Assembly (NCBI RefSeq): GCF_046119375.1
Contig: NW_027362767.1
Coordinates: 41,788,001-41,852,000, forward strand
Source: Phyllobates terribilis
Lineage: Eukaryota
DNA: 64,000 nt
Reading direction: 5' to 3'
The position numbers and the translations under genes were made by a program. Shown here one piece after another: positions 33,722 through 61,096 of the stretch; positions within the stretch are counted from its first letter, which is position 1; each line of letters starts with the position of its first letter. The notes under the pieces were generated by a model. It worked only from the letters and a program-made list of their open reading frames with translations. It made no database searches and was not told where the DNA came from.

Positions 33722-36700
33722 ATGAAAGGACAAATCATCCTCTCTGCGGCCGCCCTCACTCTCATAGCTTTATGGCTGAAGTTCTCCTTCCCTGGAGGAT
33801 ATTCATATGAGCCATTCCTTTATTCCCAACGCAGCCGGCAAATGAGGCGAGAAATTATGGAGAGACGCAAGGATTTGGTATTTTTTTATCAGACCCTATT
33901 GGAAACTAAAGGTATCGGCCCAGAGGAGGTCATGAGAGTTATGGAGGTGGCCATTGAGGTTCCTCAGAGACTCACCTGCCAGGATCTTGCCCATATTACA
34001 GGACTGGATTATATCGGATCAGGTTTTACCAAGATGGTTGTAAAAGGAACTTTACTGAATGGCAAATCCATGGCCCTCAAGTCCGTGCACGGGGAAGGCA
34101 GTGATGTGAAGCAATGTGTGCGCCAATATGGGGACCACGCTGGGTGCCACCGACTGGCCACATACAAGCTGCAGAAGGAGATTGCTCTGCTGCAGATCCT
34201 CCGCCACCCGGGGATAATCCAGGTAAATAACAATCATTTTTATTTATATAGCGCCAACATATTCCGCAGCACTGACAACCACATCCGAGAGGTCAATATG
34301 TCATTGCATCCCATACAGAATGCAGAGAGTTCCAGACTGGATGATATCTGCATTGTGATCCTATAAATTATGGGGGCTTATTGGCTCGATGCAGTGGTCA
34401 TTGGTTTGTAGAGATGTCGTGGCTGATTGGTGCCCGACTGGCATTGAGATCTAAAAGTAAAGTATTGTCATCAGAAGCGGAAATGGCACCAGGAGCAGAA
34501 AATACGGCTACGTTCACGCTGAGTTTTTTGAGGATTTTCTTGCGGATCCTCACCAAAATCCTTCTCAAAAACGCTTTCTATTAATTTCTCTGGGAAATCC
34601 ACTTTGCTGTTCATTTGAGTTTTTTGAGCGTTTTGGGGTTTTATAAAACGCCTGGTGGAAAAAAAGAGCGCATGAAACGGGTCCAGATGTAATCCGCTCC
34701 ACACTAGTCACTGTCCAATCAGAAGTCTGTAATTATATATAGATTTATAGCTATACAGGCTACATGGTGAACTGTGATTGGAGCGGAGTTTGGTCGCCCA
34801 AGTGATGAGATGAGACCCCCTTATTCCAGATCCATATTCTGGCGGGCTCCGCTGTCCACTCCTCTTGAATATTACAGATCATTAGAGCGTCCAGACATCA
34901 AAGCCACCCCATAAGTAAGAGATGTAACGATATGAGAGACGTAATTAGTGACTGCTTCACCTCCCTGCTGTCATCTTTATACTCCCCCATCCAACCCCCC
35001 GATTAGCTCTGGACAGGGAATCTGTAAATACAACAAGACAAGAGCCAACCATGGATTTCACATCCAGTTTCATCTGCGGGCACCTTCTGATGAGTTTTAT
35101 GGACATTGATGAGATCAATAGGGATCAACATTAATTCTCAGAAATGGTTGGAGTCCTGGGTGGATTGTCCAATCTTGATTTTCCCAATACCTTCAGCCTT
35201 TAGGGGGCTGATGTCTCGTAGACATGGTTAGTGGCCCTAGACATCGCTCAGCAATGGGTCTGAAGACCTTTACCGGTGGTCGGAGACCATGTGGAGTCAT
35301 CTCCTACCAAACTGTGCGGTGTCAATCACTTTGGTTTTCAAGTTGCCCCAGAGAGTATGGGGTGGGCGCCTTATTGCAGTGGTGCAGCCCCATAATGACG
35401 GTCATCGGCTGAGGCGATAAGGCCATGTCCATTTCTGGCCAGTTTTGGGGGTCACAGTTTGAACCAGAAGAACATTTGCCATAAGAAAGGAAAAAAAGAT
35501 CAATCCATTTGAACTATTGATCAGTTCTTGGCTATGGGAATTGAATACTTTTCAGGGTAAACTTAAAGGGATTGTTCATTGTCTTGCAGGGAACTTTTTT
35601 TAACACGTAGCTTAATGAAATCAATAGTTGAGTATCTATTACATGATTAAGACCCCCAATATCTCCATGACATCTATGATGTACATTAATAGAGCTATGA
35701 GCCCTGAAGTGACCAAGATTGTATGTCAATCTCACGGCTCATCAGGACACTTCCTTAGATAAACATGGCCGCTTTACACTTTCTAAAGGACACCCCCGAT
35801 GCTGTGTATATCATAATATACATATATACAGCATCTCCGCAAAGCATCGCTTCCACCAGCAATATTACAAGGATTAAAGTGTCTGTATGGGAGAGCTGAG
35901 TGACTACTAATATGGCCACCATTACTACTTTTACAGGGGTTGTTGCCCACCTTTCCCAACCTTTTGATGAGGCCCTTCACCCTTGGCTTCTACTCATGGT
36001 TGCCTGGGCATCTACTCATGGTTGTCTGGGCATCTACTCATGGTTGCCTTGGCTTCTACTCATGGTTGCCTGGGCATCTACTCATGGTTGCCTGGACATC
36101 TACTCATGGTTGCCTGGGCATCTACTCATGGTTGCCTGGGCATCTACTCATGGTTGTCTGGGCATCTACTCATGGTTGTCTGGGCATCTACTCATGGTTG
36201 CCTTGGCTTCTACTCATGGTTGCCTGGACATCTACTCATGGTTGCCTGGGCATCTACTCATGGTTGCCTGGGCATCTACTCATGGTTGCCTGGGCATCTA
36301 CTCATGGTTGCCTGGGCATCTACTCATGGTTGCCTGGGCATCTACTCATGGTTGCCTGGACATCTACTCATGGTTGCCTGGGCATCTACTCATGGTTGCC
36401 TGGGCATCTACTCATGGTTGCCTGGGCATCTACTCATGGTTGCCTGGGCATCTACTCATGGTTGCCTGGGCATCTACTCATGGTTTCCCACCTCTTTACA
36501 ATTTGTTTTTCTCTCTTTGCAGTTACATGGCCAGTGCTATGTTAATAGCGCCCCCTCTGACATCAGGGTCACAGCAATGCTGGAACTTGGATCTCCCCTG
36601 GAGATGATTCAGCTCCTGCAAACCCCCTGGGAGGAGAGATTTAAAGTAAGTGAAGGCAAACAATGGTGATTGTTCTAGTGGCCATGCCTGGTAGGTGATA

Positions 36701-39700
36701 TTAACCATCTAAACAGCTGGGAACTGCTTGCAGCCCATTACACCTCTGCCCAATGCAATCTCCCTCCAGCTGTGCGATGGTTAATGAGTAAAGGATTCCC
36801 CCAAGCAAAAGAGATTACCATAGAGGTCTGTGCAAACAGCCTGCTAAATGTCCTGCAATGTCCCCTCTGCAGGGACACAGGGGGTGGGTGAGCGGCCATT
36901 TACAATTCACAGCTCAGATCTGTGTTTGTATAAGTGGCCCTGTAAACAGGCCAGAGGTCACGCAGAAGCCATTATACTGTAAGATACAGAGGGCAGAAAG
37001 GGAATTTTTATGGCACCACATTCCTCATATTAACTTATGGAAACCAAAGCGTGAAACCTTAGCTCCACAAGGAATCCTCCTAATTTACACCTTGGTCTCA
37101 CATTGCCCAGCAGACCCTGACCGAGAATGCATCCGTTCACTGACAACAAGCAGAGATCTTTAAAAATGAAGAAAGTTGCAGAAAAAAGTCCCTTAAGGAC
37201 TGGATTCCTTTTTGCCTCCACTTTTTCCAAGTGCCATAACATTTTAGCCATGTCAGGGTTTGATTTTTTTGCGGGACAAGTTGTAGTGTTGAATAATACC
37301 ATTCGTTTTATCATTTAATGTACTGAAAATGGAAAGAAATTCCAAGTGTGAAAAAAAAAACCACAATTCCTTCCCCTGTTTTTTTGGGTTTTGTTTTTTA
37401 CAGCGTTCATTATATGGTAAAAATGTCCTGGTTACATGATTCCCCAGGTCAGTGTGATTACGGCGATACCAAAGTTGTATAGCTTATTTTCTATATATTA
37501 GTTTAAAAAAAAAACAAAAACAGAACTTTGTTAAAAAAAATAGTTTGCCTCTCTTTTCTGAGAACCGTAACGTTTTCATTTTCCCTTTGATGGAGCCATG
37601 TGAGGGCTTGTTTTTTTGCACATCAATTTATAGTATTAGTATCATTTTATACAGTACAAGTGCTTCTCACAAAATTAGAATATCATCAAAAAGTTAATTT
37701 ATTTCAGCCATAATCATCAACATTAACAGAAATAAACACGTGAAATAGATCACTCTGTGTGTAATAACTCTATATAATAGGAGTTTCACTTTTTGTATTG
37801 AAGAACTGAAATAAATTAACTTTTTGATGAAATTCTAATTTAGTGAGAAGCACCTGTATATGTGATCATTGCTTTTGATTAATTGTATTTTGTGGGTAAA
37901 GTCTGGTGTCCCCCCCAAAAAAAACTGAAAAATCTGTCAATTTTATTTTTTTTATTTATTTTATGAAATAATTATTTTCAGATTTTATTAGTTCTTTTTT
38001 ATACTTTTTTTCACACTTTTAATTAGTCCCCTAAGGGGACTTGAACCTGAAATCACTTGATCCCCCATGCAAAGCAAAGGCCGGGCTTCATAGATCCCCA
38101 ACTGTCATGGCAACTGATTGGAACACCATGATCACATTACACGAGGGGCCAATGGCTGTCAGAAGTGACATTTTAAACGCAGCTATCACGCCTGACAGTG
38201 GCATTTAAGAGGTTAAACTGATGAGATTGGAGCTAGCTGTCTGGTGCTGGCTGTGTAGCACAGCAGTCAAGGCCACTCCATACTTGTATATATGACGGCC
38301 ACCACAAAGGCGTTAAAGCTGTAACCACCAGGCAAGAGGTTTAACCTGTGGATTTAAGTGGCTAAATAATGATTGGTCAAGAGGAATGGGAACTTTTTAT
38401 ATAAAGATGCGGCATTTTTCTTGGTCTAAACACTCTATCCATTGAAATAACATGTATGCTCAGCTGAGCTGAACATGCATAAGTATGGGGGCAGATGAGA
38501 GGCCATTTTCTTCAGGAAACCATGGCGATTCCTGCAATTCGGTGGCCTGTTATTCTTGGCAGCCAATCACATTTCAGTTTTCATTTAAAAAATGGCCTCT
38601 GGAAAATGAGAGCTAGAAGATGATTGGTTGCTATGGGCAGCTGCCCCTCTTCTCCCTAGTAACACTTCTCTCCTCCAGCGCTTCTTGATAGATTTATTCT
38701 CACATTTTCATTGTTTTCGAACAGGTCTGTTGGGAATTGGTGCAGTTGCTGCATTATTTGGCAAATTCCCCTCTGGGTTCCATTGCCCTCCTGGATTTCC
38801 AGCCCAGACAGTTTGTCCTGGTGGATGGAAGCCTAAAAGTAACGGACATGGATGATGCCAGCAGCAAGGAGCCGGCGTGTAGACGGGATGCAGACTGCGC
38901 TCTCGCCTTCCCGGCCAGAACATTTACCATGAGCTGCACGGAGGCCGGACGGTGCATGGGGTCCAACGAGAAGAGGAACCTCTATAATGCGTACAGGTAT
39001 AACGCTGACCCTAATAAACCGTCTCACAGGCTGGGAACAGCAGACATAACCCTAAATCCTGTAGTAAACACGTCCTAAAATGGGACGCTGTGTGGCACCA
39101 TCGCTAATCACCAGTGTTTTCCGACAACTTTGGGCGATGTTTATATGTACATTTGGGGTCATTCACAGCCTCGTGGGTAATGGTCATTTTTGATGTTTCA
39201 GATTTTTCTTCACTTACCTCTTGCCTCACGCCGCTCCTCCCGCCCTGCGGCCACTTCTGGAAGACATCATGAATGTGACAGGTATGTCTCCTCCATAGGT
39301 GCAGGGTGGGCTACAGATGAATGGGGGGGTTTACAGGTTCTGATGCTGTTTTCACTGTTGTAATTGCAGGAGATTTACATGTCGGGATAAATGAGACCCT
39401 CGAGGCTTTTGAAGACGTATTACACGTGTACAAGTCAGGAATGACTCAAAGCCTGGAGCATCAATTACATAGTGAGGAACTTCTACAGTACCTTTCCAGA
39501 AAAATGGCGCAGCTGTGGCAAAAAATATAGCATGTGTCACCTATTAGTAGTGACTCATCAATGTGTTCTCCAAATGCCTCATCCATAATATTTGCCACAT
39601 GCCCCATCAATAGTATCTACCATATGCCTAATCTATAGTGTCCACCACATGCCTCATGTATAGCGTTATAGCGTCCATCACATGCCTCATCGGTAGTGTC

Positions 39701-42700
39701 ATCTACATGCCTCATGTATAGCGTGCACCACATGCCTCATAAGTAGTGTCCTCCACATGCCTCATGTATAGCGTCCATCACATGCCTCATCAGTAGTGTC
39801 ATCTACATGCCTCATGTATAGCGTGCACCACATGCCTCATGTATAGTGTCCTCCACATGCCTCATGTATAGTGTCCTCCACATGCCTCTGGTATAGTGTC
39901 CTCCACATGCCTCTGGTATAGTGTCCTCCACATGCCTCTGGTATAGTGTCCTCCACATGCCTCTGGTATAGTGTCCTCCACATGCCTCTGGTATAGTGTC
40001 CTCCACATGCCTCTAGTATAGTGTCCTCCACATGCCTCTAGTATAGTGTCCTCCACATGCCTCATGTATAGTGTCCTCCACATGCCTCTAGTATAGTGTC
40101 CTCCACATGCCTCTAGTATAGTGTCCTCCACATGCCTCTGGTATAGTGTCCTCCACATGCCTCTGGTATAGTGTCCTCCACATGCCTCATGTATAGTGTC
40201 CACCACATGCCTCTGGTATAGTGTCCTCCACATGCCTCATGTATAGTGTCCTCCACATGCCTCATGTATAGTGTCCACCACATGCCTCTGGTATAGTGTC
40301 CTCCACATGCCTCTGGTATAGTGTCCTCCACATGCCTCTGGTATAGTGTCCTCCACATGCCTCTGGTATAGTGTCCTCCACATGCCTCTGGTATAGTGTC
40401 CTCCACATGCCTCATGTATAGTGTCCTCCACATGCCTCTAGTATAGTGTCCTCCACATGCCTCTAGTATAGTGTCCTCCACATGCCTCAGGTATAGTGTC
40501 CTCCACATGCCTCATGTATAGTGTCCACCACATGCCTCTGGTATAGTGTCCACCACATGCCTCTGGTATAGTGTCCTCCACATGCCTCATGTATAGTGTC
40601 CTCCACATGCCTCATGTATAGTGTCCACCACATGCCTCTGGTATAGTGTCCTCCACATGCCTCTGGTATAGTGTCCTCCACATGCCTCTGGTATAGTGTC
40701 CTCCACATGCCTCGTGTATAGCGTCCATCACATGTTTCATCAGTAGTGTCTTCCACATGCCTCATTGTAGCGCCGGCATCTCTCCACTCTGCATCCCTAC
40801 CCCAGCAGAGACGCCAACTCACTCACCACCGCGGTCCCGCACTTCCTCCCTCCTCTCCTGCTGCTCATGACTGGGGTACGTACTTTGGGCGCAGATCCCC
40901 AGGCTCTGTGCTTAGGGTGCGCGCTCCCTCCTTTGTAACGGGGTCATGAATGCCATCCTAAAGTGTCCCCAGCTAATGGCTGGGAAACAACTACTATTTA
41001 AAGCAGTGTTCCCCAACTCCAGTACTCAAGGCCCACCAAAAGGTCATGTTTTTAGGATTTCCTTAGTATTGCACAGGTGATGGAATTATTGCCTGTGCAG
41101 GGGCATGCAACCTGATCCGAATATGTCAAGGAGATGAATGGAAGACGGCCTTTAATACCCGAGATGGCCATTATGAGTATCAGGAAATGCCCTTTGGACT
41201 CTGTAATGCCCCTGTCGTCTTTCAAGAACTGGTGACTGACATCTTCTGGGACCTTCTCTACACGTGTGTGGTAGTATACTTTAACGACATCTTGTTGTTC
41301 TCTCCCGATCTGCCTTTACACTGAAGGGATGTTCGCCAGGTGTAACATACCTGGCGGCGTCCTTGCATGGTGGTCCATCTCCCACTGTGCAAGAGGGCGC
41401 ACTTGATCTCCTGTCCAGAATGTCTCTCTGGCTTCCCTCCATGCTGTCTGTTTGTGTCTGTTTCTGCTGCTTAAGGGCGGCGCCCGATCACTTCCTGCCT
41501 TTTGTACCTGCTGTGGGTCACACCCCTTGTGCGTCCTCAGCCTATTGCTGTCTGTCACTTGGTATATAGCTCAGCAGCTCCCTTCTATCCCTGCCTGTGC
41601 TTAGTGTTTCCTTCAGTGTGTGCTTGCACTCTGAAGGTGCCAGGTCCCGTCTCTTGTCTCCTGCTTTTTGTATCAGTTCCCGTGTCTGAACTTAGTCCTG
41701 TATGTCTCCTGCTTTGCGGTATCAGCTCCCGTGTCTGAACTGTGTCCTGTATGTCTCCTGCTTTGCGGTATCAGCTCCCGTGTCTGAACTGAGTCCTGTA
41801 TGTCTCCTGCTTTGCGGTATCAGCTCCCGTGTCTGAACTGTGTCCTGTATGTCTCCTGCTTTGCGGTATCAGCTCCCGTGTCTGAACTGAGTCCTGTATG
41901 TCTCCTGCTTTGCGGTATCAGCTCCCGTGTCTGAACTGAGTCCTTTCTGTGCTCTCTTGTCTGTCCTGTCTGAACACGCTCCTAGCCTGTTCCTCTCGCC
42001 TTCTAGTGGCCGATTTCCTAGACCCGCTTCTGTGTCTGGTCTGTCCTGTCTGAACACGCTCCTTGCCTGTTCGTTCCGCCTTCTAGTGGCCGATTTCCTA
42101 GACCCGCTCCTGCGTCTGGTCTGTCCTGTCTGAACACGCTCCTTGCCTGTTCGTTCCGCCTCTCTGGGGGCCGTATTCCCAGACCCGCTCCTGTATCCCT
42201 CTGCAGTGTCGGTCTCTTCCGTACACTCAGTTCCAGTCTGAACTCTCTCCTGTCCTTTACCTGTTTTGCCTCTATGTCCGTTCCCTTCCTTTTTCTGCAG
42301 AGTCTGAACTCGTACCTAACTCCTGCTTGTTGTCTCTGCAAGTACTGTGTGAGTATCTGGCTCTGTCTTTCCCTTCCTGTCTGTTCCGTGTGAACAGAGC
42401 CCTGTCCTCCCTGCTCAGCCTTGTCTGCACTCTAGCTGTGCTTGCCTGTAACCCTCTGCCTGTATTGTTCCTAGTCCCGGTGTGTACTGGGTCCTATCCC
42501 GCCTGTGTTCCTACCTGCTAGTGCCTCCCTGTCTGCACTCTAGCTTTGCTTGCCTTTACCCCCCTGCCTGCATACCCGCCTGCCTGCATACCAGTCGTGC
42601 CTGCCTATACCCTCCAGTCTGTGTGCCAGCCTGTTCCTGTATTCCCCTGTGTGGGTCAACAGCCGTGTCCGGGGTCTGTCCTGGAGTAGCACCTGGTCCC

Positions 42701-45700
42701 TCTGCTCGGTTCCTCCTTGGTGCACTGGCGTCGTATGCCGTCGTGCGACCCTGGTCGGATCGGGTGAATACTTAGTCACGCCCCTCCAGGCATTCACTCT
42801 CCGGCACGGTCCAGTGGAATCACTACCAATCACACGCACACGCCGCTTAGCCCGGGCGTGTGCATAACAGCATGCTCAGGCCATGGTTCCCGTTGAGCCC
42901 CACGGCCTTCGCTCTTTGAGAAGTTTTTCCAGCGAATACATGCATTAAAATAAAATAAATAAATTTTTTTCCCCCTTTAGCTGAGTTCCAGGCGAGTTAC
43001 GCACCCGTCCAGATGGATCTATCAGCCCTCGTTCCTGCGGATCCGCCACGTTACTATGGGGATCCAAGACAGTGTCGTGCATTTGTGGAGCAATGCATGC
43101 TACACTTTAAGGCCTACCCTCTCTATTTTCCTTCCGATTGGGCTAAAGTGGCCTTTATGATTGACTACCTAGCGGGTGATGCCTTGAAATGGGTCACCCC
43201 CCTATGGGAAGCATGGGATCCTGTCATCCTTGACCTGCAGGCCTTCCTGGTGGCCTTTCGTATGGTCTTCGAGGACCCTAACTCTGAAGCCCCTGCTGAA
43301 GCTTCACTTCCCAATATCCCGGAGCAGCCCCGACGGGTAATGTGTGTGGGTAGCGCAATAGTCCTCCAGCCCAATGAGACTACTGCCCACCCAGAATCCT
43401 CACAGGGTGACTACGCTTTCCGGAATACTTCTCTCAACCTCAAGAGGCAGTCCAGACGTGCTAGACTTAGAGGCAAGCCGTCACGCCAGGGTCTGTCCTC
43501 CCTGAGACCTCCTGACCCCAACCTTGAAGTCCCTACTGAAGCTTCATCTCCCTGTATCCCGGAGAAACCCCAATGGGTAATGTGCGTGGGTAGTGCACCA
43601 GTTCTCCTGGCCGAAGAGACTTCTGCCCATCCAGACTCCACACAGGAGAACTTCCTGCACCCGGCATCAGATGCTTCTTTCTCTTTAACCGGTGTGCATG
43701 TCCAAGGATGCTCCAAAGCTGTGGTTACCTCAGAGTCTGTGCACCTCTACTACCTGGCGGAGGATCCCCTGTTGCCTCCTGAACCCTCCGGGATACCACT
43801 CGATGACAAATGGAGAGAGACTTCTCTACACCCGGTACTCAATACTTTGTCCGCTTCGTCCTGTGAGCCTGACAATGGGTACCCCAAAGTGGTAGTTACC
43901 TCCGAGTCTCTACACCCCTCCGACCAGGCGGAGGATCTCCAGTTGTCTCCTGAACCCTTCGGGGTGCTACCTGGTAGCGAAAGGACAGAGACTCTCCTAT
44001 ACTCTGTACCTGATACCTCGCTCGCTTCGTCCAGTGAGTCCAACTTAGTGTACTCCGAAGCAGAGGTTACTCCTGAGTCTCTACACCCCTCCGACCAGGC
44101 GGAGGACCTCCAGTTGTGTTCAGAATCCTTCGGGGTGCCACCTGGTGGTGAATGGACAGAGACTTTCCTATATCCTGGATCTGATACCTCGCTTGCTTCG
44201 TCCAGTGAGTCCGACCTAGTGTACTCTGAAGCAGAGGTTACCCGTGAGTCTCTACACCCCTCTGACCAGGCGGAGGACCGCCAGCTGTCTCCAGAACCCT
44301 TCGGGGTGCCACCTGGTGGTGAATGGACAGAGACTTTCCTATACTCGGTACCCGATACCTCGCCTGCTTCCTCCAGTGAGTCCGACCTAGTGTACTCTGA
44401 AGCAGAGGTTACCCGTGAGTCTCTACACCCCTCTGACCAGGCGGAGGACCGCCAGCTGTCTCCAGAACCCTTCGGGGTGCCACCTGGTGGTGAATGGACA
44501 GAGACTTTCCTATACTCGGTACCCGATACCTCGCCTGCTTCCTCCAGTGAGTCCGACCTAGTGTACTCTGAAGCAGTTGTTTTCTCTGAGCCTCTGCACT
44601 CTTCTGACCCGGCGGAGGACCTCCAGTTGTTTCCTGAATCCTCCGGGATACCACCAGATAACAAAGAGACAGTGACTTTTCCTCATTATGTACGTGATAA
44701 CCCGTCTATTTCTTCCTGTGAGCTTGACAAGATGTACCTCGAAGCAGAGATTACCCTTAAGTCTCTGTCCCCCTCCAACCCAGTGAACGACTGGCCCTCG
44801 AATTCCCTGCGGAAGATTCTGGCAGGCCTGAAGAAGAGGGGGCGTAAGGGGGGAGGTACTGTAACATACCTGGCGGCGTCCTTGCATGGTGGTCCATCTC
44901 CCACTGTGCAAGAGGGCGCACTTGATCTCCTGTCCAGAATGTCTCTCTGGCTTCCCTCCATGCTGTCTGTTTGTGTCTGTTTCTGCTGCTTAAGGGCGGC
45001 GCCCGATCACTTCCTGCCTTTTGTACCTGCTGTGGGTCACACCCCTTGTGCGTCCTCAGCCTATTGCTGTCTGTCACTTGGTATATAGCTCAGCAGCTCC
45101 CTTCTATCCCTGCCTGTGCTTAGTGTTTCCTTCAGTGTGTGCTTGCACTCTGAAGGTGCCAGGTCCCGTCTCTTGTCTCCTGCTTTTTGTATCAGTTCCC
45201 GTGTCTGAACTTAGTCCTGTATGTCTCCTGCTTTGCGGTATCAGCTCCCGTGTCTGAACTGTGTCCTGTATGTCTCCTGCTTTGCGGTATCAGCTCCCGT
45301 GTCTGAACTGAGTCCTGTATGTCTCCTGCTTTGCGGTATCAGCTCCCGTGTCTGAACTGTGTCCTGTATGTCTCCTGCTTTGCGGTATCAGCTCCCGTGT
45401 CTGAACTGAGTCCTGTATGTCTCCTGCTTTGCGGTATCAGCTCCCGTGTCTGAACTGAGTCCTGTATGTCTCCTGCTTTGCGGTATCAGCTCCCGTGTCT
45501 GAACTGTGTCCTGTATGTCTCCTGCTTTGCGGTATCAGCTCCCGTGTCTGAACTGAGTCCTGTATGTCTCCTGCTTTGCGGTATCAGCTCCCGTGTCTGA
45601 ACTGAGTCCTTTCTGTGCTCTCTTGTCTGTCCTGTCTGAACACGCTCCTAGCCTGTTCCTCTCGCCTTCTAGTGGCCGATTTCCTAGACCCGCTCCTGTG

Positions 45701-48700
45701 TCTGGTCTGTCCTGTCTGAACACGCTCCTTGCCTGTTCGTTCCGCCTTCTAGTGGCCGATTTCCTAGACCCGCTCCTGCGTCTGGTCTGTCCTGTCTGAA
45801 CACGCTCCTTGCCTGTTCGTTCCGCCTCTCTGGGGGCCGTATTCCCAGACCCGCTCCTGTATCCCTCTGCAGTGTCGGTCTCTTCCGTACACTCAGTTCC
45901 AGTCTGAACTCTCTCCTGTCCTTTACCTGTTTTGCCTCTGTCCGTTCCCTTCCTTTTTCTGCAGAGTCTGAACTCGTACCTAACTCCTGCTTGTTGTCTC
46001 TGCAAGTACTGTGTGAGTATCTGGCTCTGTCTTTCCCTTCCTGTCTGTTCCGTGTGAACAGAGCCCTGTCCTCCCTGCTCAGCCTTGTCTGCACTCTAGC
46101 TGTGCTTGCCTGTAACCCTCTGCCTGTATTGTTCCTAGTCCCGGTGTGTACTGGGTCCTATCCCGCCTGTGTTCCTACCTGCTAGTGCCTCCCTGTCTGC
46201 ACTCTAGCTGTGCTTGCCTTTACCCCCCTGCCTGCATACCCGCCTGCCTGCATACCAGTCGTGCCTGCCTATACCCTCCAGTCTGTGTGCCAGCCTACCA
46301 GCCTGTTCCTGTATTCCCCTGTGTGGGTCAACAGCCGTGTCCGGGGTCTGTCCTGGAGTAGCACCTGGTCCCTCTGCTCGGTTCCTCCTTGGTGCACTGG
46401 CGTCGTATGCCGTCGTGCGACCCTGGTCGGATCGGGTGAATACTTAGTCACGCCCCTCCAGGCATTCACTCTCCGGCACGGTCCAGTGGAATCACTACCA
46501 ATCACACGCACACGCCGCTTAGCCCGGGCGTGTGCATAACACCAGGTCCTGCAGAGATTAAGGAAGAACCATCTGTACGTCAAATATGAAAAGTGCGTCT
46601 TTGAGCAGACATCTCTTCCGTTTCTGGGGTACATCATTTCCAAGACCAGCTTGAAAATGGATCTCGTGAAGGTATCCTCCATCTTAAAGTGGCCCTGTCC
46701 AGACAGTCTGAAAGACAACCAGCAGTTTCTCGGATTTGCAAACTATTACCGCCAGTTTATTTCACATTTCTCCTCTTGGACTGCTCTTATTTCTGCCCTG
46801 ACTCGCAAGAGGGCCAATCCTAAGATATGGGCTCCAGAGGCAGAGAATGCCTTTGTGTCTTTAAAACAGGCCTTCTCCTCAGCTTCTGTGCTGCATTGTC
46901 CGGACAATAACAAGCAGTTCTTTCTGGAGGTGGATGCTTCTTCTTCAGGGGACACAGCCGTTCTTATTCAGAAGTCTTCTTCCGGTCGCATTGTGAGCTG
47001 CGGCTTCTTTCCCAAGATCTTCTCTGCTCCAGAACGCAATTACCCTATAGGTGATCGAGAACTGTTAGCGATTAAACTGGCTCTGGAGGAGTGGATACGT
47101 TGGTTATATACACTGACCACAAGAATCTAGCCTATCTGCAATCCGCACAGCAACTTAACCCACGACAAGCCAGGTGGTCTCTGTTCTTCACTCGCTTCAA
47201 CTTCACTCTCCATTTTCCTGCCGGCAGATAAGAACGTTAAGGCAGATGCACTCTCTAGATCCTTCCAGTCTTCCGACCAGGAGGAGGAGTCTCAACACAT
47301 CACTGAGCCCTCCAAAATTTTTACGGTCACACCGTTGGATTTGTCTCAGCTCCCTTCCAGAAAGATTTACATGGCTGTACCAGGTAGGAAGTGAGTTCTT
47401 CTATGGGTTCACTCGTCTAAGGTGGCTGGCCATGCCGGTCAGAAGAAAACTGCTCTCCTCATCTCCCAACATTATTGATAGCCAACCTTGTGCAAGGATA
47501 TTGCGGATTTTGTCTCTGCCTGTCCCTCTTGTGCCCAGATCAAAACCCCGAAACAGCTGCCTACCAGCAGCATATAGCAATAGATTTCATCATCGATCTT
47601 CCACTATCGGCCGGGTGTACTGTTATCGGGGTGGTTGTGGATCGCTTCTCCAAGATGGCCCATTTCACTCCACTGCCTGGTCTCCCATCTACTCCAGTGC
47701 TTGCAGAGAAGTTCTTTATAAATATTTTTCGCCTCCATGGTCTTTCGCTCCATATTGTCTCGGATAGAGGCATCCAATTTACTTCTCACTTCTGGGTGGC
47801 CACCTGCAAATTACTTAATGTCACTATGGATTTTTCTTCAGCCTACCACCCTCAATCCAATGGCCAGGTAGAGCTGGTCATTCAGATCCTGAACACCTTC
47901 CTGCGGCACTTCATCAGTACCTACCACAGTGACTGGTCTGAACTCAGCTGTGGGCTGAATTCTCGTACAATAGCCATGTGAGTGAATTTTCTGCCAAATC
48001 TCCATTTTTTGTAGTCTAAGGTCAACATCACAATATTCTGTTCCCTGTTTCTACTACCTCCAATATTCTTGCTGCTGAATCCCTCATCAAGGGTTTTTCT
48101 AAGATCTGGGAGGACACCAAGTCCAAATTATTGAAGTCCTTGGAACTGATGAAAAGACACAAAGACTAGAGACGTCTGGATCCACCTCTGTTTTGTCCTA
48201 GGTACAAGGTCTGGCTGTCATCTAAATATGTCCGTCTCAAGGTACCATGCTATAAACTTGGTCCTCGCTTCATCGGATCATTCGAGGTTCTAAAACGGAT
48301 CAGTTCAGTAGCCTACAAGCTCAGACTTCCGGCCTCTTTACGGATCCACAGTTCTTTTCACGTGTCTGTCGTCATCAGTCCTTTTTTCAAAGATCCCGGT
48401 GTACCACTCCTGCTCCAGTCAGCACTGAAGACATTTTTGAGGTAGAGCACATTCTGTCCATCAACTTTTAAAAAAAAAAAAAAAATGTCATCAAAACTTT
48501 TTTTCTTGTGGATTGGAAGGGGTTTGGTCCTGAGGAGAGGTTTTGAGAGCCTAGGGAGAACATCCATGCCCCTCTCCTCCTAGAGAAATTCCTTGCGTGC
48601 TTGAAAAAGAGGGGGCATAAGGGTGGGGGGGTACTGTACCACCGGCATCTCTGCACTCTGCCTGCCTCCCCCAGCAGAGATGCCAACTCACTCACTGCCG

Positions 48701-51700
48701 TAGTCCAGCACTTCCTCCCTCCTCTCCTGCTGGTGATGTCCGAGGTACGCGGTTCTGCATGCAGATCCCTGGGCACAGTGCTTAGAGCGCGCAAGCTCCC
48801 TCCTTGAAGGAGCCACACGCGCTGTCCTAAAGTGTCCCCAGCCAATGGCTGTGAGAAAATTACTATTTAAAGCACCTGCACCGGCATGGAGGTGCCTGTG
48901 CACAGTTGTTAGTCTGTTTCTTAAACATGCTTGCTAGTTCTCAGGTCCCAGTGCTTGTACCCCTGTATACCAGTCCTATATATCAGCCATGCCTCGCTGC
49001 CTGTCTGTATATTAGCAATTCCGGTCTGCACCAGCCTGCCTGTATATCAGCCGTGCCCATCTGCACCAGCCTGCCTGTATATCAGTCGTTCCCGCCTACC
49101 TATCAGCCGTGCCCACCTGCAGCTGCTGCCAGGATACCAGTCGTGCCCTGTAGTACCTGCCTACCTGTGTGTCTGTCATGCCAGTCACTAGACCAGCCGT
49201 GCCAGCCAGTACTTGCCAAGTCTGTCATTCCTGCCTCCTGTCCCTTGGGGGTCAGCTGCCATCCACCCGATGTCAGTCCTGGAGTAGCACCTGTCTCTGG
49301 CTCCCTAGTCTCTCCTCGGATCAAGGTATCGTCAGCCGCCGTGCATCCGAGGTCGTATTTGGTGAGGCACCTAGTCACGCCCCTCCAGGCTCTCCTCGGA
49401 TCACAGTGGTTCAACAACCCAGTCCGTTACACTCATCAGTAGTGTCCTCCACATGCCCCATTAATAGCGTCCTCCACATGCTCCATTAGTAGCGTCTTCC
49501 ACATGCCACATCAATAGTGTCATCCAAATGCCCTGTCAATAGTATCCTCCACATTAACATCAATAGTAAAACCTACAAAAGACAAAAATATATCTCATAC
49601 CCTACCATCATTATATATAAATGTAAAGCAAAGTTGCATAATAAATATAGGGTACTTAGTGAACTATTTTTGATCAAAAAAAGTTCACTAAGTACCCTAT
49701 ATTTATTATGCAACTTTGCTTTACATTTATATATAATGATGGTAGGGTATGAGATATATTTTTGTCTTTTGTAGGTTTTGCTTCTTTTTGCTAGTGTGAA
49801 CATGCTCCTATTTCTTGCATGTCTACCATCTTAGACCTCAGTTCACATTGCTTGGTTTATTAACATCAATAGTGTCCATCACATGCCCCATCAATAGTGT
49901 CCTCCACATGCCCCATCATTACATCTACTTTACTCTTTTGGTTGGTGAGCATGCATTCACCTTATTGCATGGTTACCCTAAACCATACATGTCAAACTCT
50001 GGACCATGGGCCAAATCTGGCCCGCAGGGTGGTTATATTTGGCCCGAGACACCAGAACCGCCACCCCAATGTGGGGCCATTATTCTGTATGGAGGACTAT
50101 ATGGGGCCCATTATACTGTATGGAGGACTATGTGGGCCCATTATTCTGTATGGAGCACTATGAGGGGCCATTATTCTGTATGGAGGACTATGTGGGGCCC
50201 ATTATACTGTATAGAGGACTATGTGGGGCCCATTATTCTGTATGGAGGACTATGTGGGGCCATTATACTGTATGGAGGACTATGTGGGGTCTATTATTAT
50301 GTATGGAGGATTATGTGGGGCCATTATACTATTTGGAGAACTATGTGGAGCCCATTATACTGTATACTTGTTGGCCCGTGACTTTGTCCAAGTTTTTCAT
50401 TTAGGCCCTCTGTGTGTTTGAGTTTGACATCCCTGCCCTAAACTATCAATGTTGATATGACTGGTTGCTGCTATGATCTGGTAATAATGTAGCGTGCACA
50501 GATGCCGAATACCGACGGACTCTAAAGTAGTCACATCCTCCTCACCACTCAAATCGCGCTATTGTTTATCACAGTTTTTAGAGTACAGACCAAAAGTTTG
50601 GACACACCTTCTCATTTAAAGATTTTTCTGTATTTTCATGACTATGAAAATTATACATTCACACTGAAGGCATCAAAACTATGAATTAACATATGTGGAA
50701 TTATATACTTAACAAAAAAGTGTGAAACAACTGAAAATATGTCTTATATTCTAGGTTCTTCAAAGTAGCCACCTTTTGCTTTGATGACTGCTTTGCACAC
50801 TCTTGGCATTCTCTTGATGAGCTTCAAGAGGTAGTCACCGGAAATGGTTTTCACTTCACAGGTGTGCCCTGTCAGGTTTAAGAAGTGGGATTTCTTGCCT
50901 TATAAATGGTGTTGGGACCATCAGGTGTGTTGTGCAGAAGTCTGGTGGATACACAACTGATAGTCCTACTGAATAGACTGTTAGAATTTGTATTATGGCA
51001 AGAAAAAAGCAGCTAAGTAAAGAAAAACTAGTGGCCATCAGTATTTTAAGAAATGAAGGTCAGTCAGTCCGAAAAATTGGGCAAACTTTGAAAGTGTCCC
51101 TAAGTGCAGTTGCAAAAACCATCAAGCGGTACAAAGAAACTGGCTCACATGAGGACCGCCCCAGGAAAGGAAGACCAAGAGTCACCTCTGCTCCTGAGGA
51201 TAAGTTTATCCGAGTCACCAACCTCAGAAATCGCAGGTTAACAGCAGCTCAGATTAGAGACCAGGTCAATGCCACACAGAGTTCTAGCAGCAGACACATC
51301 TCTTCAACAACTGTTAAGAGGAGACTTTGTGCAGCAGGCCTTCATGGTAAAATAGCTGCTAGGAAACCACTGCTAAGGACAGGCAACAAGCAGAAGAGAC
51401 TTGTTTGGGCTAAAGAACACAAGGAATGGACATTAGACCAGTGGAAATCTGTGCTTTGGTCTGATGAGTCCAAATTTGAGATCTTTGGTTCCAACCACCG
51501 TGTCTTTGTGCGACGCAGAAAAGGTGAACGGATGGACTCTACATGCCTGGTTCCCACCGTGAAGCATGGAGGAGGAGGTGTGATGGTGTGAGGGTGCTTT
51601 GCTGGTGACACTGTGGGGGTTTATTCAAAATTGAAGGCATACTGAACCAGCATGGCTACCACAGCATCTTGCAGCGGCATGCTATTCCATCCGGTTTGCG

Positions 51701-54700
51701 TTTAGTTGGCCCATCATTTATTTTTCAACAGGACAATGACCCCAAACACACCTCCAGGCTGTGTAAGGGCTATTTGACCAAGAAGGAGAGTGATGGGGTG
51801 CTACGCCAGATGACCTGGCCTCCACAGTCACCAGACCTGAACCTAATCGAGATGGTTTGGGGTGAGCTGGACTGCAGAGTGACGGCAAAAGGGCCAACAA
51901 GTGCTAAGCATCTCTGGGAACTCCTTCAAGATTGTTGGAAGACCATTTCCGATGACTACCTCTTGAAGCTCATCAAGAGAATGCCAAGAGTGTGCAAAGC
52001 AGTCATCAAAGCAAAAGGTGGCTACTTTGAAGAACCTAGAATATAAGACATATTTTCAGTTGTTTCACACTTTTTTGTTAAGTATATAATTCCACATGTG
52101 TTAATTCATAGTTTTGATGCCTTCAGTGTGAATGTACAATTTTCATAGCCAGGAAAATACAGAAAAATCTTTAAATGAGAAGGTGTGTCCAAACTTTTGG
52201 TCTGTACTGTATATCATACTGTTACACTTCATACATGACCCTAATCCTCTCCTGCTCTGTATTCCAGATTACACAGTTCTGAGAGGATTCCGCATGAATG
52301 ACACAGACGGAGATTTCAGGTGCTGGCCGTCCTATAACCACCAGGGATGCCTGCTGTCCGTATACAGTGCGGCGGAGGCTGCTGACTTCTGCAACAGTCG
52401 TCCACAGTGTCACAACTTTGTCATTAGTCTGCAGAGGACATGGACTGGTATGTAGCCTGGGGCTGATATCGTATTTCCTCTATATAGTGTACTGTCATAC
52501 AGTGTACAAATAACCATACAGTGCATAACTATATAAGCTTAATACAGTTTGGTGCCAAAATAACAGGGACATACACTGACCTAAATATACTGTCATACAC
52601 TTGTCTAATACAGAGCGACCACTATATACTGCAAAAATAATAGTATTGACTATAATGCTTAGGTATATACCACCATACAGTGCTAAAATATTACTGCCAT
52701 ACAGTGACCAAATAACAAATCCATACATAAAGTAATTTATTAATAATGCTACGTAATGTGTAAATAATACCGCTATATAGTGAGCAAACAGCTTCATACA
52801 TAAAGAAAATAATAATTCTGTGTAATGTATAAATATTATCGTCATGTAGTGACCAAGTTACAGCTTCACAGATAAAGAAACTAATAATAATGTTATATAA
52901 TGTATAAATAACATTACTATACAGTGGCCAAATAACAGATAACAAGTGCGTGCATAAAGTAATCTAATAACAGTGCAATATATTGTAGAAATTTGGAAAT
53001 ACATTGACTAAATAACAGCTTGATACATAAAGTAATGTAAAAATAAAGTGATATAATGTATAAATAATGCCATCATACAGTCACCAAATAACAGGTCCCT
53101 GCATAAAGTAATCAAATAAATGTACAATAAGATGCAAAAAGTAATACTGTCATACAGAGATCATATAACAGCTTCATACATAGAGTAATCTAATAGCAAA
53201 GCTATCTAATATATAATTAATACTGTCATACCGTGACCATATAACAGGTTAATGCATAAAATAATAAAATAACGGTGTCATGTATGTATAAATAATATTG
53301 CCTTACAGTGGCTCAATAAAAATGTCATATATAATCTCATGACAGTCGATAATGTATAAATAGTACCACCATATAATAACCAAATAAAAGCTGTGCATAA
53401 AGTAATGTAATAATAGTGCAATACAATGTACTGTATAAGCAATCGCGCTATACACCTAATATTAAGATTGGTTGTGGCTGCACCTGGATTTTTACTCGCA
53501 AATTCAGCGGTGGATTTTGCCTGTAATCCATGTATTACATTGCAGATTAGTCACCCGTTTCCGAAGCTCGCAGCACTCCTCCTCCCTGCCCCTATATTTT
53601 AGCCCTATTTCATCCTCAATTTCCTGTTATTTTCTGATAGTCCTTCACTTTACGAGGCCTCGGCGCTGAGTTACTGTAAATTCTCATTTATCATGCTGTT
53701 TCCCAGCATGTTGCTGCTCTTTAGATCCCTATCACAGCAGTTATCCTGGTAATTATATTTGGGGAGTACGATGGCTCTTGCAGATACGTGGATCCTGGCA
53801 GCGGCACATTTTGATTATATTACGGAGGCTTTTATTACATGCCAGCACATAATGTGCCACAGGGCTCACGGTGTTGACAATATCTCAGAACTCTTTGTAT
53901 ACACTTTTAATCTTTGGAAAAGTGCTCAGCAGAGACATTCTGAAATACATTACATACGCCCCGTGTCCCCATGTGAGGGTTACGTGCGTGGAAATGCACT
54001 GATTGGAATCTCGGCTCGGGTCCAGGCTGTTTGTGTTTGGAATACCACGGTTTAGGGACATTTTGAGCCTCTGTTCCCGTAATCCTGGTGGGGAAGTCTT
54101 CCAAACAGCAGGTGTGGTCAAAACAGCTGGACTTAAAGAAGTATTCCCATCTCCAGGATCCTATCCCAATATCTAGTAGGTGTAATAATAATAATATTGG
54201 CAAATGCCTCCAATTAGAAATATAGTATAGTTCTCCTGATTAGCTATGTCGCTTACCCCATGAGCAGGGCATTGCTGTAACTTAGATATCCATGGTTATG
54301 ACCACTCATACAGTGACAGTTAGTTATTGGTGGTCGTAACCATGGATACTTAAGTTACTGCAATGCCCTGCACATGAGGTAAGCGACATAGCTAATCAGG
54401 CAAACTATACTACGTTTCTAATTGGAGGTATTTGCTAATATTATTATTACACCTACTACCTATTGGAATAGGATCTTGGAAATGGGAATACCTCTTTAAA
54501 GAGAATAGATGGAGGCAGGACACGCATAGACTGTTTCATTTGCTGGAGGAGGGGATATTTTGATATACATTTACTTTGGATTTATTTTATTTAATTTCTG
54601 TATTTTTTATTTTTTTTTAAATATTTACTCTATTTTTTTTTTACAAATGAATTAACCTTTCAATTTTATTTAAAGGGGTTGTGCTTGTTTAACAATCCCG

Positions 54701-57734: not shown

Positions 57735-60700
57735 AGTAAAGTAGTTATATTCTTGTACATTGGGGGCAGTATTATAGTAGTTATATTCTTGTACATAGGA
57801 GCAGTATTATAGTAGTTATATTCTTGTACATAGGAGCAGTATTATAGTAGTTATATTCTTGTACATAGGGGGCAGTATTATAGTAGTTATATTCTTGTAC
57901 ATAGGGGGCAGTATTATAGTAGTTATATTCTTGTACATAGGACCAGTATTATAGTAGTTCTATTCTTGTACATAGGAGCAGTATTATAGTAGTTATATTC
58001 TTGTATATAGGGGGCAGTATTATAGTAGTTATATTCTTGTACATTGGGGGCAGTATTATAGTAGTTATATTCTTGTACATAGGGGCAGTATTATAGTAGT
58101 TATATTCTTGTATATAGGGGGCAGTATTATAGTAGTTATATTCTTGTACATTGGGGGCAGTATTATAGTAGTTATATTCTTGTACATAGGAGCAGTATTA
58201 TAGTAGTTATATTCTTGTACATAGGGGGCAGTATTATAGTAGTTATATTCTTGTACATAGGGGGCAGCATTATAGTAGTTCTATTCTTGTACATAGGACC
58301 AGTATTATAGTAGTTATATTCTTGTACATAGGGGGCAGTATTATAGTAGTTATATTCTTGTACATAGGACCAGTATTATAGTAGTTATATTCTTGTATAT
58401 AGGGGGCAGTATTATAGTAGTTATATTCTTGTACATAGGAGCAGTATTATAGTAGTTACAGTATATTCTTGTACATAGGGGCATTATTATAGTAGTTATA
58501 TTATTGTACATGTTATGCACACGCCCGGACTGACTGGCGTGTGCGGGTGTTGTGGTTCCACTGGACCATGGACCGGAGAGTGCCTGGAGGGGCGTGACTA
58601 AGTATCTGGCCGATCCGACCAAGGTGGCACGACGGCATACGACGCCAGTGCACCAGGGAGAAACCGGGCAGAGGGACCAGGTGCTACTCCAGGTCAAACT
58701 CCGGACACGGGGGTTGACCCACACTGGAATTACTGGAACAGGCAGGTTAGGCTGGCACAGACTGGTGGATGTAAGCAAACACGGCAGGTATGCAGAGGGG
58801 TGGATACAGGCGAGTATGCAGGCAGGGAGGTACTGGCCGAAAGGACGGGCTGGAGCACAGTAAGGTTAAGACCCAGTACAGACTGGGTCACAGAACCGCA
58901 GATGCGGTAGACAACCACAGCAGAGAGGGAATGCCCAAAGCGGTGGGCAAGAACAGAGCAGGACGGGGCTGCAGGAGCAGCGAGCACAAGCAGGGCAGGA
59001 CAGGACTGCCGGAGCAGCAGGCAGAAGCAGGGCAGGACAGGACTGCCGGAGCAGCGGGCAGAAGCAGGGCAGGACAGGACTGCCGGAGCAGCGGGCAGAA
59101 GCAGGGCAGGACAGGACTGCCGGAGCAGCGGGCAGAAGCAGGGCAGGACAGGACTGCCGGAGCAGCGGGCAGAAGCAGGGCAGGACAGGACTGCCGGAGC
59201 AGCGGGCAGAAGCAGGGCAGGACAGGACTGCCGGAGCAGCGGGCAGAAGCAGGGCAGGACAGGACTGCCGGAGCAGCGGGCAGAAGCAGGGCAGGACAGG
59301 ACTGCCGGAGCAGTGAGCAAAAGGGTAAGAGCGGAGCAAGGCTGCCGGAGCAGTGAGCAAGGAGTCAGAGCAGGACGGACAGGGCTCTGTTCACACGGAA
59401 CAGACAGGAAGGGAAAGGCAGAGCCAGATACCCACAGGGTACTTGCAGTGAAGTAGCGAGGGGACCACAAACTCACAAACGGGAGTACAGAGACAACAAG
59501 CAGGAGTTAGGTACGAGTTCAGACTCTGCAGAAAAAGGAAAGGAACGGACATAGAGGCAAAACAGGTAAAGGATAGGAGAGAGTTCAGACTGGAACTGAG
59601 TGTACGGAAGAGACCGACACTGCAGCGGGATACAGGAGCGGGTCTGGGAATACGGCCCCCAGAGAGGCGGGATGAACAGGCAAGGAGCGTGTTCAGACAG
59701 GACAGACAAGATACAGGAACGGATCTAGGTAATCGGCCCCTAGAAGGCGGGAGGAACAGGCTAGGAGCGTGTTCAGACAGGCCTGGAAATACAGCCTCCA
59801 GGAAAGGCAGCAGGCAAGAGTACACAGACAGGACTCAGTTCAGACACGGGAACTGATACCGCAAGGCAGGAGACATAGACAGGACTCAGTTCAGACAGGA
59901 ACAGATACCGCAAGGCAGGGACACAAACAGGACTCTGTTCAGACGGGAACAGATACCGCAAGGCACAGACAGGCAGATCTAGGAATACGGCCCCTAGAAG
60001 GCGAAAGAACAGGCAAGAAGCGTGTTCACAAGAACAGACCACAGTTCAGACACAGAACTGGAAAACAGGCAGGAAAACAGGATAGGACCTGGCATGTCAG
60101 AGACAAAAAGCCGACTGACAGGACACAATGCTCAGGCGCCATCTTGAGGAAGAAGGTGGTATAAATACCCAAAGATGGACAGCAATAGGCTGAAGGTGCA
60201 ACAGGGGCGTGTCCGCAGAAGGTACAAGAAACAGGAAGTTCAGCGGGCGTCGCCCTATGCAGCCAAAACAGACAAACAGACAGCAAGGAGGGAAGCCAGA
60301 GAGACATTCTGGACTGGAGATCAAGTGCGCGCTCTTGCACAGTGGGAGATGGACCACCATGCAAGGACGCCGCCAGGTATGTTACAGTACATAGGAGCAG
60401 TATTATAATAGTTATATTCTTGTACATAGGGAGCAGTATTTTAGTAGTTATATTTTTGTACATAGGGGGTAGTATTATAGTAGTTATATTCTTGTACATA
60501 GGGGCAGTATTATAGTAGTTATATTCTTGTACATAGGGGCAGTATTATAGTAGTTATATTCTTGTACATAGGGGGCAGTTTTATAGTAGTTATATTCTTG
60601 TACATAGGGAGCAGTATTATAGTAGTTATATTATTATACATAGGGGCTGTATTATAGTAGTTATATTCTTGTACATAGGGGGCAGTATTATAGTAGTTAT

Positions 60701-60845
60701 ATTCTTGTACATAGGAGCAGTATTATAGTAGTTATATTCTTGTGTATATAAGGGGCAGTATTATAGTAGTTATATTCTTGTACATAGGGGGCAGTATTAT
60801 AGTAGTTATATTCTTGTACATAGGGGGCAGTATTATAGTAGTTAC
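57735..60845. repeat. 34-36-bp minisatellite interrupted by a solo LTR
   Basis: Unit TAGTAGTTATATTCTTGTACATAGGGGGCAGTATTA at 57735-58510 and 60387-60845. Confidence 0.95.
58511..60386 (-). mobile_element. Solo LTR related to the 41341 element
   Basis: The minus strand begins TGTAACATACCTGGCGGCGTCC and ends GTGTGCATAACA like the 41341 LTRs. TSD GTACA (58506-58510, 60387-60391); internal 37-bp array ~58990-59310. Confidence 0.93.
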
Positions 60846-61096
60846 ATTCAAAAACTGCCTCTCATTGACCCCCTAAAACACAGTCGTGGGAAACCGATGG
60901 GTTATCGTGTCCTACTGAAGGCCCCTATCTATAACTGCCATCTTGGTCTTCCAACTTATGGAAGAACGTTATTTTAACTTTACACTGAAGTACTGTAGTA
61001 TTGCAGTATCTAGAATAAGCGATGAATTGTACCCTAAGAAGACAACAAAAATAAAGTGAAAAAAAAAAGTGAAATAAAAAGGTATATATATATATA

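Follow-up and report, generated by a model that had tools for sequence, protein, structure and literature searches.

The TR-GAG elements of plants are flanked by long terminal repeats (LTRs), lack pol and carry a single open reading frame (ORF) derived from gag; they are considered semi-autonomous elements that need a partner (PMC13570524). LDOC1 and RTL8 are "half-capsid" genes, consisting of the capsid's N-terminal lobe (N-lobe) with adjoining disordered regions (PMC10516033), and RTL8 binds the N-lobe of PEG10 and lowers particle yield (PMC11684626). In yeast, Ty1 p22/p18 and Drt2 are element-derived partial capsids that act in trans on full-length Gag (PMC4599808, PMC10951436). We describe here a complete LTR element at positions 41341-46541 of a 64,000-nucleotide (nt) stretch of the Phyllobates terribilis genome (contig NW_027362767.1; hereafter the window, to which all coordinates refer). 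An earlier reading of this DNA, made from the letters alone (the original prediction), had compared the element with LDOC1/RTL8 and with plant TR-GAG elements, and both comparators were correctly described (PMC10516033, PMC13570524). The explanation to which we lean, with a confidence only a little beyond even, is that of a non-autonomous LTR retrotransposon mobilised in trans, with a reading frame that is kept open and a half-capsid product that binds the Gag of its partner.

The two LTRs have TG..CA ends and were aligned globally, revealing 2 substitutions, gaps of 8 nt and 2 nt, and a single gap of 147 nt corresponding to three units of a 49-nt array, which is present in 5.9 copies in the 5' LTR and 8.9 copies in the 3' LTR. 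Identity was 99.87% across 1527 aligned columns. Because there are 2 differences in 1527 nt, the insertion would have occurred within about the last few hundred thousand years, given an assumed, unmeasured neutral rate of roughly 1e-9 to 2.5e-9 per site per year. The element is bordered on both sides by the same pentamer, a perfect target-site duplication (TSD), and a polypurine tract (PPT) abuts the 3' LTR, so that paired LTRs with TG..CA ends, TSD and PPT, as expected of an LTR retrotransposon, are present. No protease, reverse transcriptase (RT), RNase H or integrase was found in the element with Pfam, for which DUF4939 was the sole match, and a tblastn search with the 1093-amino-acid (aa) pol of an autonomous frog relative (Logan contig L001) matched the element solely by its last 11 residues, at the PPT. 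The two substitutions, two small indels and one repeat-number change between the LTRs, the perfect TSD, the PPT and the lack of pol enzymes were thus all recovered as originally predicted. An assembly artefact was rejected, as the TSD, the continuity of the surrounding host element and the difference in LTR repeat number all suit a genuine insertion. The element is young, structurally intact and pol-less, and was inserted very recently into a dead relative. It derives from a chromovirus-like Ty3/gypsy lineage, with a gag of the clade from which PEG10, RTL and LDOC1 arose, and it has kept the cis parts required for copying by foreign enzymes: the LTRs, the leader and the PPT. The primer-binding site expected in the leader was not identified; the leader gave no alignment to those of L001 or L002, and there is no tRNA gene in the window. 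An Rfam scan of positions 40500-49600 returned no match, so no ribozyme or other known RNA was recognised there.

The start of the ORF is, by sequence, the capsid N-lobe of a Ty3/gypsy gag of the PEG10/RTL/LDOC1-type clade. Residues 11-86 matched Pfam DUF4939/RTL1-8_LDOC (PF16297) with an E-value of 2.8e-6. A phmmer search with residues 1-120 against 1.84 billion representatives yielded 1609 matches, the best with E-values of 8e-26 to 4e-25 and 51-52% identity. The nearest were frog gags or gag-pols (Ranitomeya variabilis, R. imitator, Mixophyes, Xenopus and Ascaphus), along with short ORFs of amphibians to which NCBI gives the names "LDOC1" and "LDOC1-like"; full-length relatives carry PF16297, PF03732 and Ty3_capsid (PF19259). 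A profile of 60 relatives matched PEG10 in the PDB (7lga, E 3.6e-18, profile positions 145-234) and also Ty3 Gag; the 7lga match probably covers a part of the capsid downstream of that kept by the element. AlphaFold2 (AF2), run with the alignment of relatives, predicted five helices in residues 18-86, with a mean predicted local distance difference test score (pLDDT) of 84 and values above 90 for residues 11-88. The top Foldseek matches of this model were all retroelement capsid lobes: the Arc N-lobe (TM score 0.71 on the target), PNMA2, dArc1 and the Ty3 capsid. The original assignment to a gag N-domain is upheld by the Pfam match to DUF4939 (below the cut-off), the phmmer matches and the confident helical bundle. 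The label "sushi", applied originally, found no support among the N-lobe relatives returned, none of which bears that name.

Conservation changes sharply at the end of this lobe. Within residues 9-89, 22 of the 24 columns conserved at ≥70% in the family are kept (family median 0.87), versus two of the six strongly conserved columns in residues 90-120 (family median 0.83), and the N-lobe appears to be intact on this count. The gag homology had been predicted to halt at the motif FEDP. It was found instead to fade over the next 20-75 residues: many tblastn alignments continue to about residue 109 and a few to residues 140-164, and these longer ones span an ~18-aa insertion and pick up a motif that is characteristic of the beginning of the following capsid segment. 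Because the alignments run on past FEDP, we interpret the stretch after residue 89 as a decayed continuation of gag and not as a foreign graft; the C-lobe and the zinc knuckle are no longer recognisable in it.

The ORF follows the gag frame at its 5' end and the pol-tail frame at its 3' end, the two being one and the same frame, and it occupies 93% of the internal region. Its 691-aa length, its lack of interruption, its passage through the PPT and its end 229 nt into U3 were all reproduced. Upstream of the ATG, the open frame extends for a further 16 codons, which resemble the Pro/Ala/Ser linker of normal gags. The 10-aa peptide encoded by the PPT resembles the 10-aa pol tail of the host element and shares its reading frame, and the DNA of the pol tail and PPT is 84% identical between the two elements over 43 nt, consistent with the homology originally proposed; the host pol frame likewise reads through the PPT into the host LTR. 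The whole ORF remained open in 0 of 20000 mononucleotide shuffles, and the first 226 codons alone in 0.025% (n=20000), such that the length of the ORF is far beyond chance. Word-indexed protein searches with the whole ORF, residues 1-110 and the first 226 residues gave no match, nor did metagenome scans with the start of the LTR and with the ORF. When the ORF, a pair of ORFs borne by the LTRs, an ORF for a Tc1 transposase and an exon of cellular appearance were looked up exactly, none was on record, a result of little weight given that the collection probably lacks the source genome.

Most of the ORF downstream of the gag-derived part is repetitive. What had been described as two 75-aa repeats is actually a 41-aa core, duplicated with its copies 80 codons apart. 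The description of about six 57-aa Glu/Ser/Pro-rich repeats proved apt: there are six full units, two of them identical, and a partial seventh. The 57-aa repeat region is rich in Ser, Glu, Pro and Leu, with a net charge of -49 over residues 236-615. Neither Pfam nor the PDB contains a relative of this region, and the capture of a known cellular domain is therefore unsupported. Derivation of the 57-aa units from the 41-aa core or from the N-lobe was rejected at the DNA level (z about 0). The composition of the tail suggests that it is disordered; an AF2 model of the whole protein built without an alignment was uninformative, with a mean pLDDT of 37 and low values even in the N-lobe.

The units have diverged by up to 33% without acquiring a stop, as the original prediction had it, and with frame and unit length kept. 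All 57-aa units measure exactly 171 nt, with 0 net indels. In the non-coding LTRs of the family (the element compared with a solo LTR, and the two LTRs of the host with each other), an indel occurs for every 4-15 substitutions; at this rate, the ~141 substitutions among the units predict 9-36 indels, and the probability of finding none lies between 8e-5 and 1e-16. We take 8e-5 as the fair figure, because some pairs of units admit small compensating gaps and the LTR ratios include slippage-prone arrays. Other arrays in the window at similar divergence have 0-6% indels. Four diverged units were stop-free in only 1.3% of neutral simulations, and the composition of the repeats by codon position (G 0.35 at position 1 and 0.10 at position 2) matches that of the N-lobe. 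The repeat tail thus appears to be held in frame and at constant unit length, with its amino acids drifting.

Several observations weigh against the explanation to which we lean. The Nei-Gojobori (NG86) dN/dS ratio of the repeats is ~0.65, versus 0.44 in a control frame on the other strand, that of the 41-aa pair is 1.2, and the differences among units are spread evenly across the three codon positions. An ORF of 304 aa is open on the opposite strand over the repeats, and the openness of the repeats is therefore partly compositional. Translation would begin at an internal Met that has a weak context (C at -3), is preceded by three other ATGs and directly follows an AATAAA cluster, and the 60-100 N-terminal gag residues that usually precede the capsid are absent. 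The DUF4939 match scores 27.6 bits, just under the 29-bit gathering cut-off, the Foldseek E-values of 0.6-2 are not significant alone for so small a domain, and the alignment used for the conservation counts was chosen by likeness to the query, which flatters it. No coding signature is seen in the U3-encoded end of the ORF, and the solo LTR does not share its stop. Finally, this copy is the only one known of the internal region, from searches that covered no frog assembly. Many of these points would suit an untranslated relic, that is, a deletion derivative of the large retrotransposon derivative (LARD) type, in which a gag stump is followed by a minisatellite with a period that is by chance a multiple of three and the long ORF reflects youth, A-poor composition and chance. 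The insertion is indeed very young, so the intact ORF of this copy could merely mirror its parent; the + strand is A-poor (20% A), leaving fewer stops, with the opposite-strand ORF in the same place; neither the repeats nor the U3 tail show amino-acid constraint; the window is full of minisatellites; and the start context is poor, with upstream ATGs. Nevertheless, we consider such a relic rather unlikely, because it would have to account for the results of the shuffles, both for the whole ORF and for the first 226 codons, for zero net indels in the repeats where 9-36 are expected, for the coding-like codon-position composition of the repeats, and for the sharp difference in conservation between the N-lobe and the stretch that follows it.

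The last 76 codons of the ORF lie in U3 and can be compared with the solo LTR of a related subfamily in the window. The first 40 of them differ from the solo LTR by 5 nt, with mostly amino-acid-changing effects, and the last 35 are 59% identical to it, with a flat distribution of differences over codon positions; the frame of the solo LTR runs for 46 further codons, so the stop of the ORF is not shared. The Cys-rich U3 tail was consequently rejected as a selected peptide: its first 40 codons are conserved as DNA, it has no coding signature, and it ends at a stop that the solo LTR lacks. Between the two LTR subfamilies, which are otherwise 75-81% alike, the initial 120 nt of U3 show 96% identity (44860-44979 versus 60267-60386 on the - strand); this conserved start has no coding signature and is longer than an integrase-binding end would need. 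Further into the LTR, at positions about 205-229, four LTRs that are otherwise 60-80% identical share a CCAAT-like motif and, ~20 nt after it, a TATA-like motif; the stop of the ORF falls inside the TATA-like motif of the 3' LTR (45082-45088). If this motif (LTR positions 223-229) is a promoter, transcription would start just downstream of it, U3 would be only about 255 nt long, the transcript would include the 49-nt and 80-nt arrays, and its leader would measure about 1.4 kb, with 10 ATGs. None of the common poly(A) hexamers was found anywhere in the LTR. The leader has a cluster of ATTAAA/AATAAA motifs (42944-42970) with a T run after it, 45-70 nt upstream of the ATG of the ORF. This cluster could be a scar of the deletion or recombination by which the gag N-terminus was lost, or it could mark a poly(A) site used prematurely or a region of internal starts.

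The U3-encoded end of the ORF also bears on the possibility that the open frame serves the RNA and not the protein. With an ORF reaching from near the 5' end into U3, little would be left untranslated at the 3' end, and the RNA would be shielded from decay that senses early stops; the tail peptide would be irrelevant and the N-lobe would be conserved through recent inheritance from, or exchange with, an autonomous partner. This explanation predicts the very pattern of frame and length kept with amino acids free. It also fits an ORF that nearly fills the internal region and stops in a TATA-like motif at the presumed U3/R border, and the crossing of the PPT into the LTR by the host pol frame. 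Conservation of the N-lobe while the adjoining gag decayed would, however, require frequent recombination with the partner, and we consider a frame serving the RNA alone to be quite unlikely.

For the non-autonomous, trans-mobilised retrotransposon that we favour, the following course of events can be proposed. An autonomous relative in the same genome would copy the element in trans. The ORF would be translated, and its half-capsid product would bind the N-lobe of the partner's Gag, as proposed because RTL8 does so with PEG10 (PMC11684626). This binding would bring the product, and possibly the element's own RNA, to the assembling particles of the partner, with a possible disturbance of their assembly as a side effect. 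The repeat tail would act like a disordered spacer, for which only openness and composition matter. Support for this reading is provided by the single frame shared by the gag start and the pol tail and by the contrast in conservation between the N-lobe (22/24) and the downstream stretch (2/6).

The same binding could have a different outcome. The half-capsid may poison the assembly of autonomous relatives as a dominant negative, in the manner of RTL8 on PEG10 or Ty1 p22 on Ty1 Gag, and be favoured by the host, with this locus or a sister locus heading towards domestication. The domain content matches that of the half-capsid genes LDOC1 and RTL8 (PMC10516033, PMC11684626), and truncated-Gag restriction factors are established in yeast (PMC4599808, PMC10951436), with PDB entries 7nlh and 9rxy among the fold matches of the N-lobe. 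Short ORFs that end just past the N-lobe and are annotated "LDOC1" or "LDOC1-like" (P0004, P0011, P0033 and P0054) are found in the caecilian Rhinatrema, the newt Pleurodeles and the frogs Dendrobates tinctorius and Dendropsophus, and could be read in the same sense. The chances of such an inhibitor are nonetheless slim in our estimation: this copy is a recent insertion of a mobile element, with its LTRs intact and within a dead transposon, and not a fixed host gene, blocking its own helper would curb the spread of the element itself, and the yeast factors retain the C-terminal capsid domain and not the N-lobe. Half-capsid ORFs of the same gag clade do seem to recur in amphibian genomes, as genes or as decayed transposon copies.

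The element resembles TR-GAGs in its LTRs, its lack of pol enzymes and its one gag-derived ORF. TR-GAGs, however, are known from plants and as a rule retain a gag or gag/protease domain, whereas this amphibian element has the N-lobe only, its C-lobe and zinc knuckle being replaced by a 500-aa acidic repeat tail that runs through the PPT into U3. With an intact N-lobe, a decayed C-lobe and no zinc knuckle, its ORF would suit the idea of a retained gag without being a full one. With LDOC1 and RTL8A/B/C (RTL/SIRH/Mart family), it shares the Pfam family PF16297 and the restriction to the capsid N-lobe. These are fixed, LTR-less genes conserved across placental mammals under purifying selection, whereas the element is young, complete with LTRs and TSD, devoid of the N-terminal helix and five times longer; its ORF is not an immobile locus without LTRs, as a domesticated gene would be, and lies within a complete element nested in a dead transposon. 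Ty1 p22/p18 and Drt2 are likewise partial capsids, and their structures are among the Foldseek matches, but they are Ty1/copia proteins that retain the C-terminal domain of the capsid, and their source is either a domesticated gene or a transcript that arises inside an autonomous element; the present ORF, by contrast, has a Ty3/gypsy gag N-lobe and lies in an element without pol. The autonomous, chromovirus-like frog Ty3/gypsy elements (Logan contig L001 and the Ranitomeya gag and gag-pol sequences P0002 and P0003) have a gag N-lobe 49-52% identical to that of the element, and a similar pol tail and PPT are present in L001, the host element and the young element. Unlike the latter, these autonomous elements have a full gag (N-lobe, C-lobe and CCHC knuckle), protease, RT, RNase H and an integrase with a chromodomain; in L001, gag is followed by pol in another frame, and pol ends in the chromodomain. 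None of the three is close enough to be the partner.

Half-capsid genes of the LDOC1/RTL8 type are known only as old, fixed host genes, in which the halving of the capsid is deduced after the fact. Here, a halved capsid is still inside a freshly inserted mobile retrotransposon, in a frame with signs of being kept open. Should the element prove to be multi-copy and expressed, gag-retaining non-autonomous LTR elements, found mainly in plants in the literature searched, would extend to vertebrates; the comparison of copies would provide a natural system for studying selection on the protein of a parasite of a parasite, and the first step of capsid domestication would become observable. Should it be a singleton, it would be an ordinary deletion derivative with an unusually tidy ORF. 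The broader proposal is of a vertebrate family of active, pol-less LTR elements that express an N-lobe with a disordered acidic tail as they spread, ride on and interfere with autonomous relatives and constitute a living intermediate towards LDOC1/RTL8-type genes; it strikes us as doubtful. A mobile, recently active family, as in the original prediction, is not supported beyond this one copy and the related solo LTR, and the packaging parasite, dominant-negative restriction factor and domestication precursor named there are putative roles.

The features of the element and of its relatives in the window are listed in Table 1.

Table 1. Positions of the young element, its parts and related sequences in the window.
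Feature	Position	Strand	Remarks
Target-site duplication, left copy	41336-41340	+	CCAGG; same pentamer as right copy
5' LTR	41341-42869	+	1529 nt; TG..CA ends
TATA-like motif in 5' LTR	41563-41568	+	
49-nt array in 5' LTR	41655-41944	+	5.9 copies
80-nt array in 5' LTR	41955-42194	+	3 copies
Leader	42870-43012	+	between 5' LTR and ORF; three upstream ATGs; A/T-rich ATTAAA/AATAAA cluster at 42944-42970
Single ORF	43013-45088	+	691 aa; stop included in coordinates; ends 229 nt into 3' LTR
Capsid N-lobe (N-terminal domain, CA-NTD)	43043-43279	+	residues 11-89; Pfam, phmmer, AF2, Foldseek
Decayed gag continuation	43280-43504	+	residues 90-164; ~18-aa insertion; C-lobe and zinc knuckle unrecognisable
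41-aa core, two copies	43286-43408, 43526-43648	+	residues 92-132 and 172-212; 80% nt identity; 80 codons apart
57-aa (171-nt) units	43691-44812	+	six full (residues 227-568) plus partial seventh
Polypurine tract	44830-44859	+	purine-rich; abuts 3' LTR; homologous to PPT of host element
3' LTR	44860-46541	+	1682 nt; first 229 nt (U3) encode last 76 codons of ORF and stop
Target-site duplication, right copy	46542-46546	+	CCAGG; same pentamer as left copy
CCAAT-like and TATA-like region	41545-41570, 45064-45089, 60150-60180 (-), 48840-48870, 40975-41005		four related LTRs
Host element	40766-49431	+	old, broken chromovirus-like Ty3/gypsy copy; flanked by a 5-bp duplication of its own, CTCAT; within a 25-nt satellite
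Solo LTR, related subfamily	58511-60386	-	75-81% identical; first 55 nt identical; own 5-bp duplication TGTAC

The young element interrupts the RT region of the host element. In the alignment with the L001 pol, residues 295-373 lie to the left of the young element and residues 375-1090 to its right; the host was therefore continuous before the insertion and the duplication is genuine. The host pieces carry RVT_1, RT_RNaseH, rve and SH3_Tf2-1. Damage to the host pol amounts to at least nine stops, at least three frame changes and one large 5' deletion, in addition to the nested insertion; the deletion spans the greater part of the 5' LTR, gag, protease and the beginning of RT. The remnants of the host LTRs are 79% identical to each other. 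A 25-nt satellite is present at 39667-40763 and 49432-49554, on both sides of the host element, indicating that the latter was inserted into this satellite. The insertion site of the solo LTR is a 36/71-nt satellite (57740-58511 and 60387-60849), and the solo LTR itself contains a 37-nt array (58945-59313). Three insertions of the lineage, with TG..CA ends and each with a 5-bp duplication (CCAGG, CTCAT and TGTAC), are thus present in the window: with the young element, the host element and the solo LTR, at least three insertions were made by this LTR lineage within about 20 kb.

Many further minisatellites occur in the window, with units of 22-41 nt (at 12043, 14034, 20791, 24545, 35981, 50069, 55462 and 55983). 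A 32-nt satellite at 231-4596, with 136 copies and 99% identity, lies beside a run of N (28-227) and yields a meaningless ORF of 1437 aa (19-4332). Two copies of Tc1/mariner type, at 50995-52046 (+) and 61569-62556 (+), carry HTH_Tnp_Tc3_2 and DDE_3, the second having an ORF of 258 aa. Cellular-looking exons were found on the + strand at 33722-34366, 38737-39078 and 52132-52455, the second of which weakly matches, below the cut-off, the kinase domain of FAM69/PIP49 (E 0.002). An intron of a gene of this cellular type may hold the nest of transposons.

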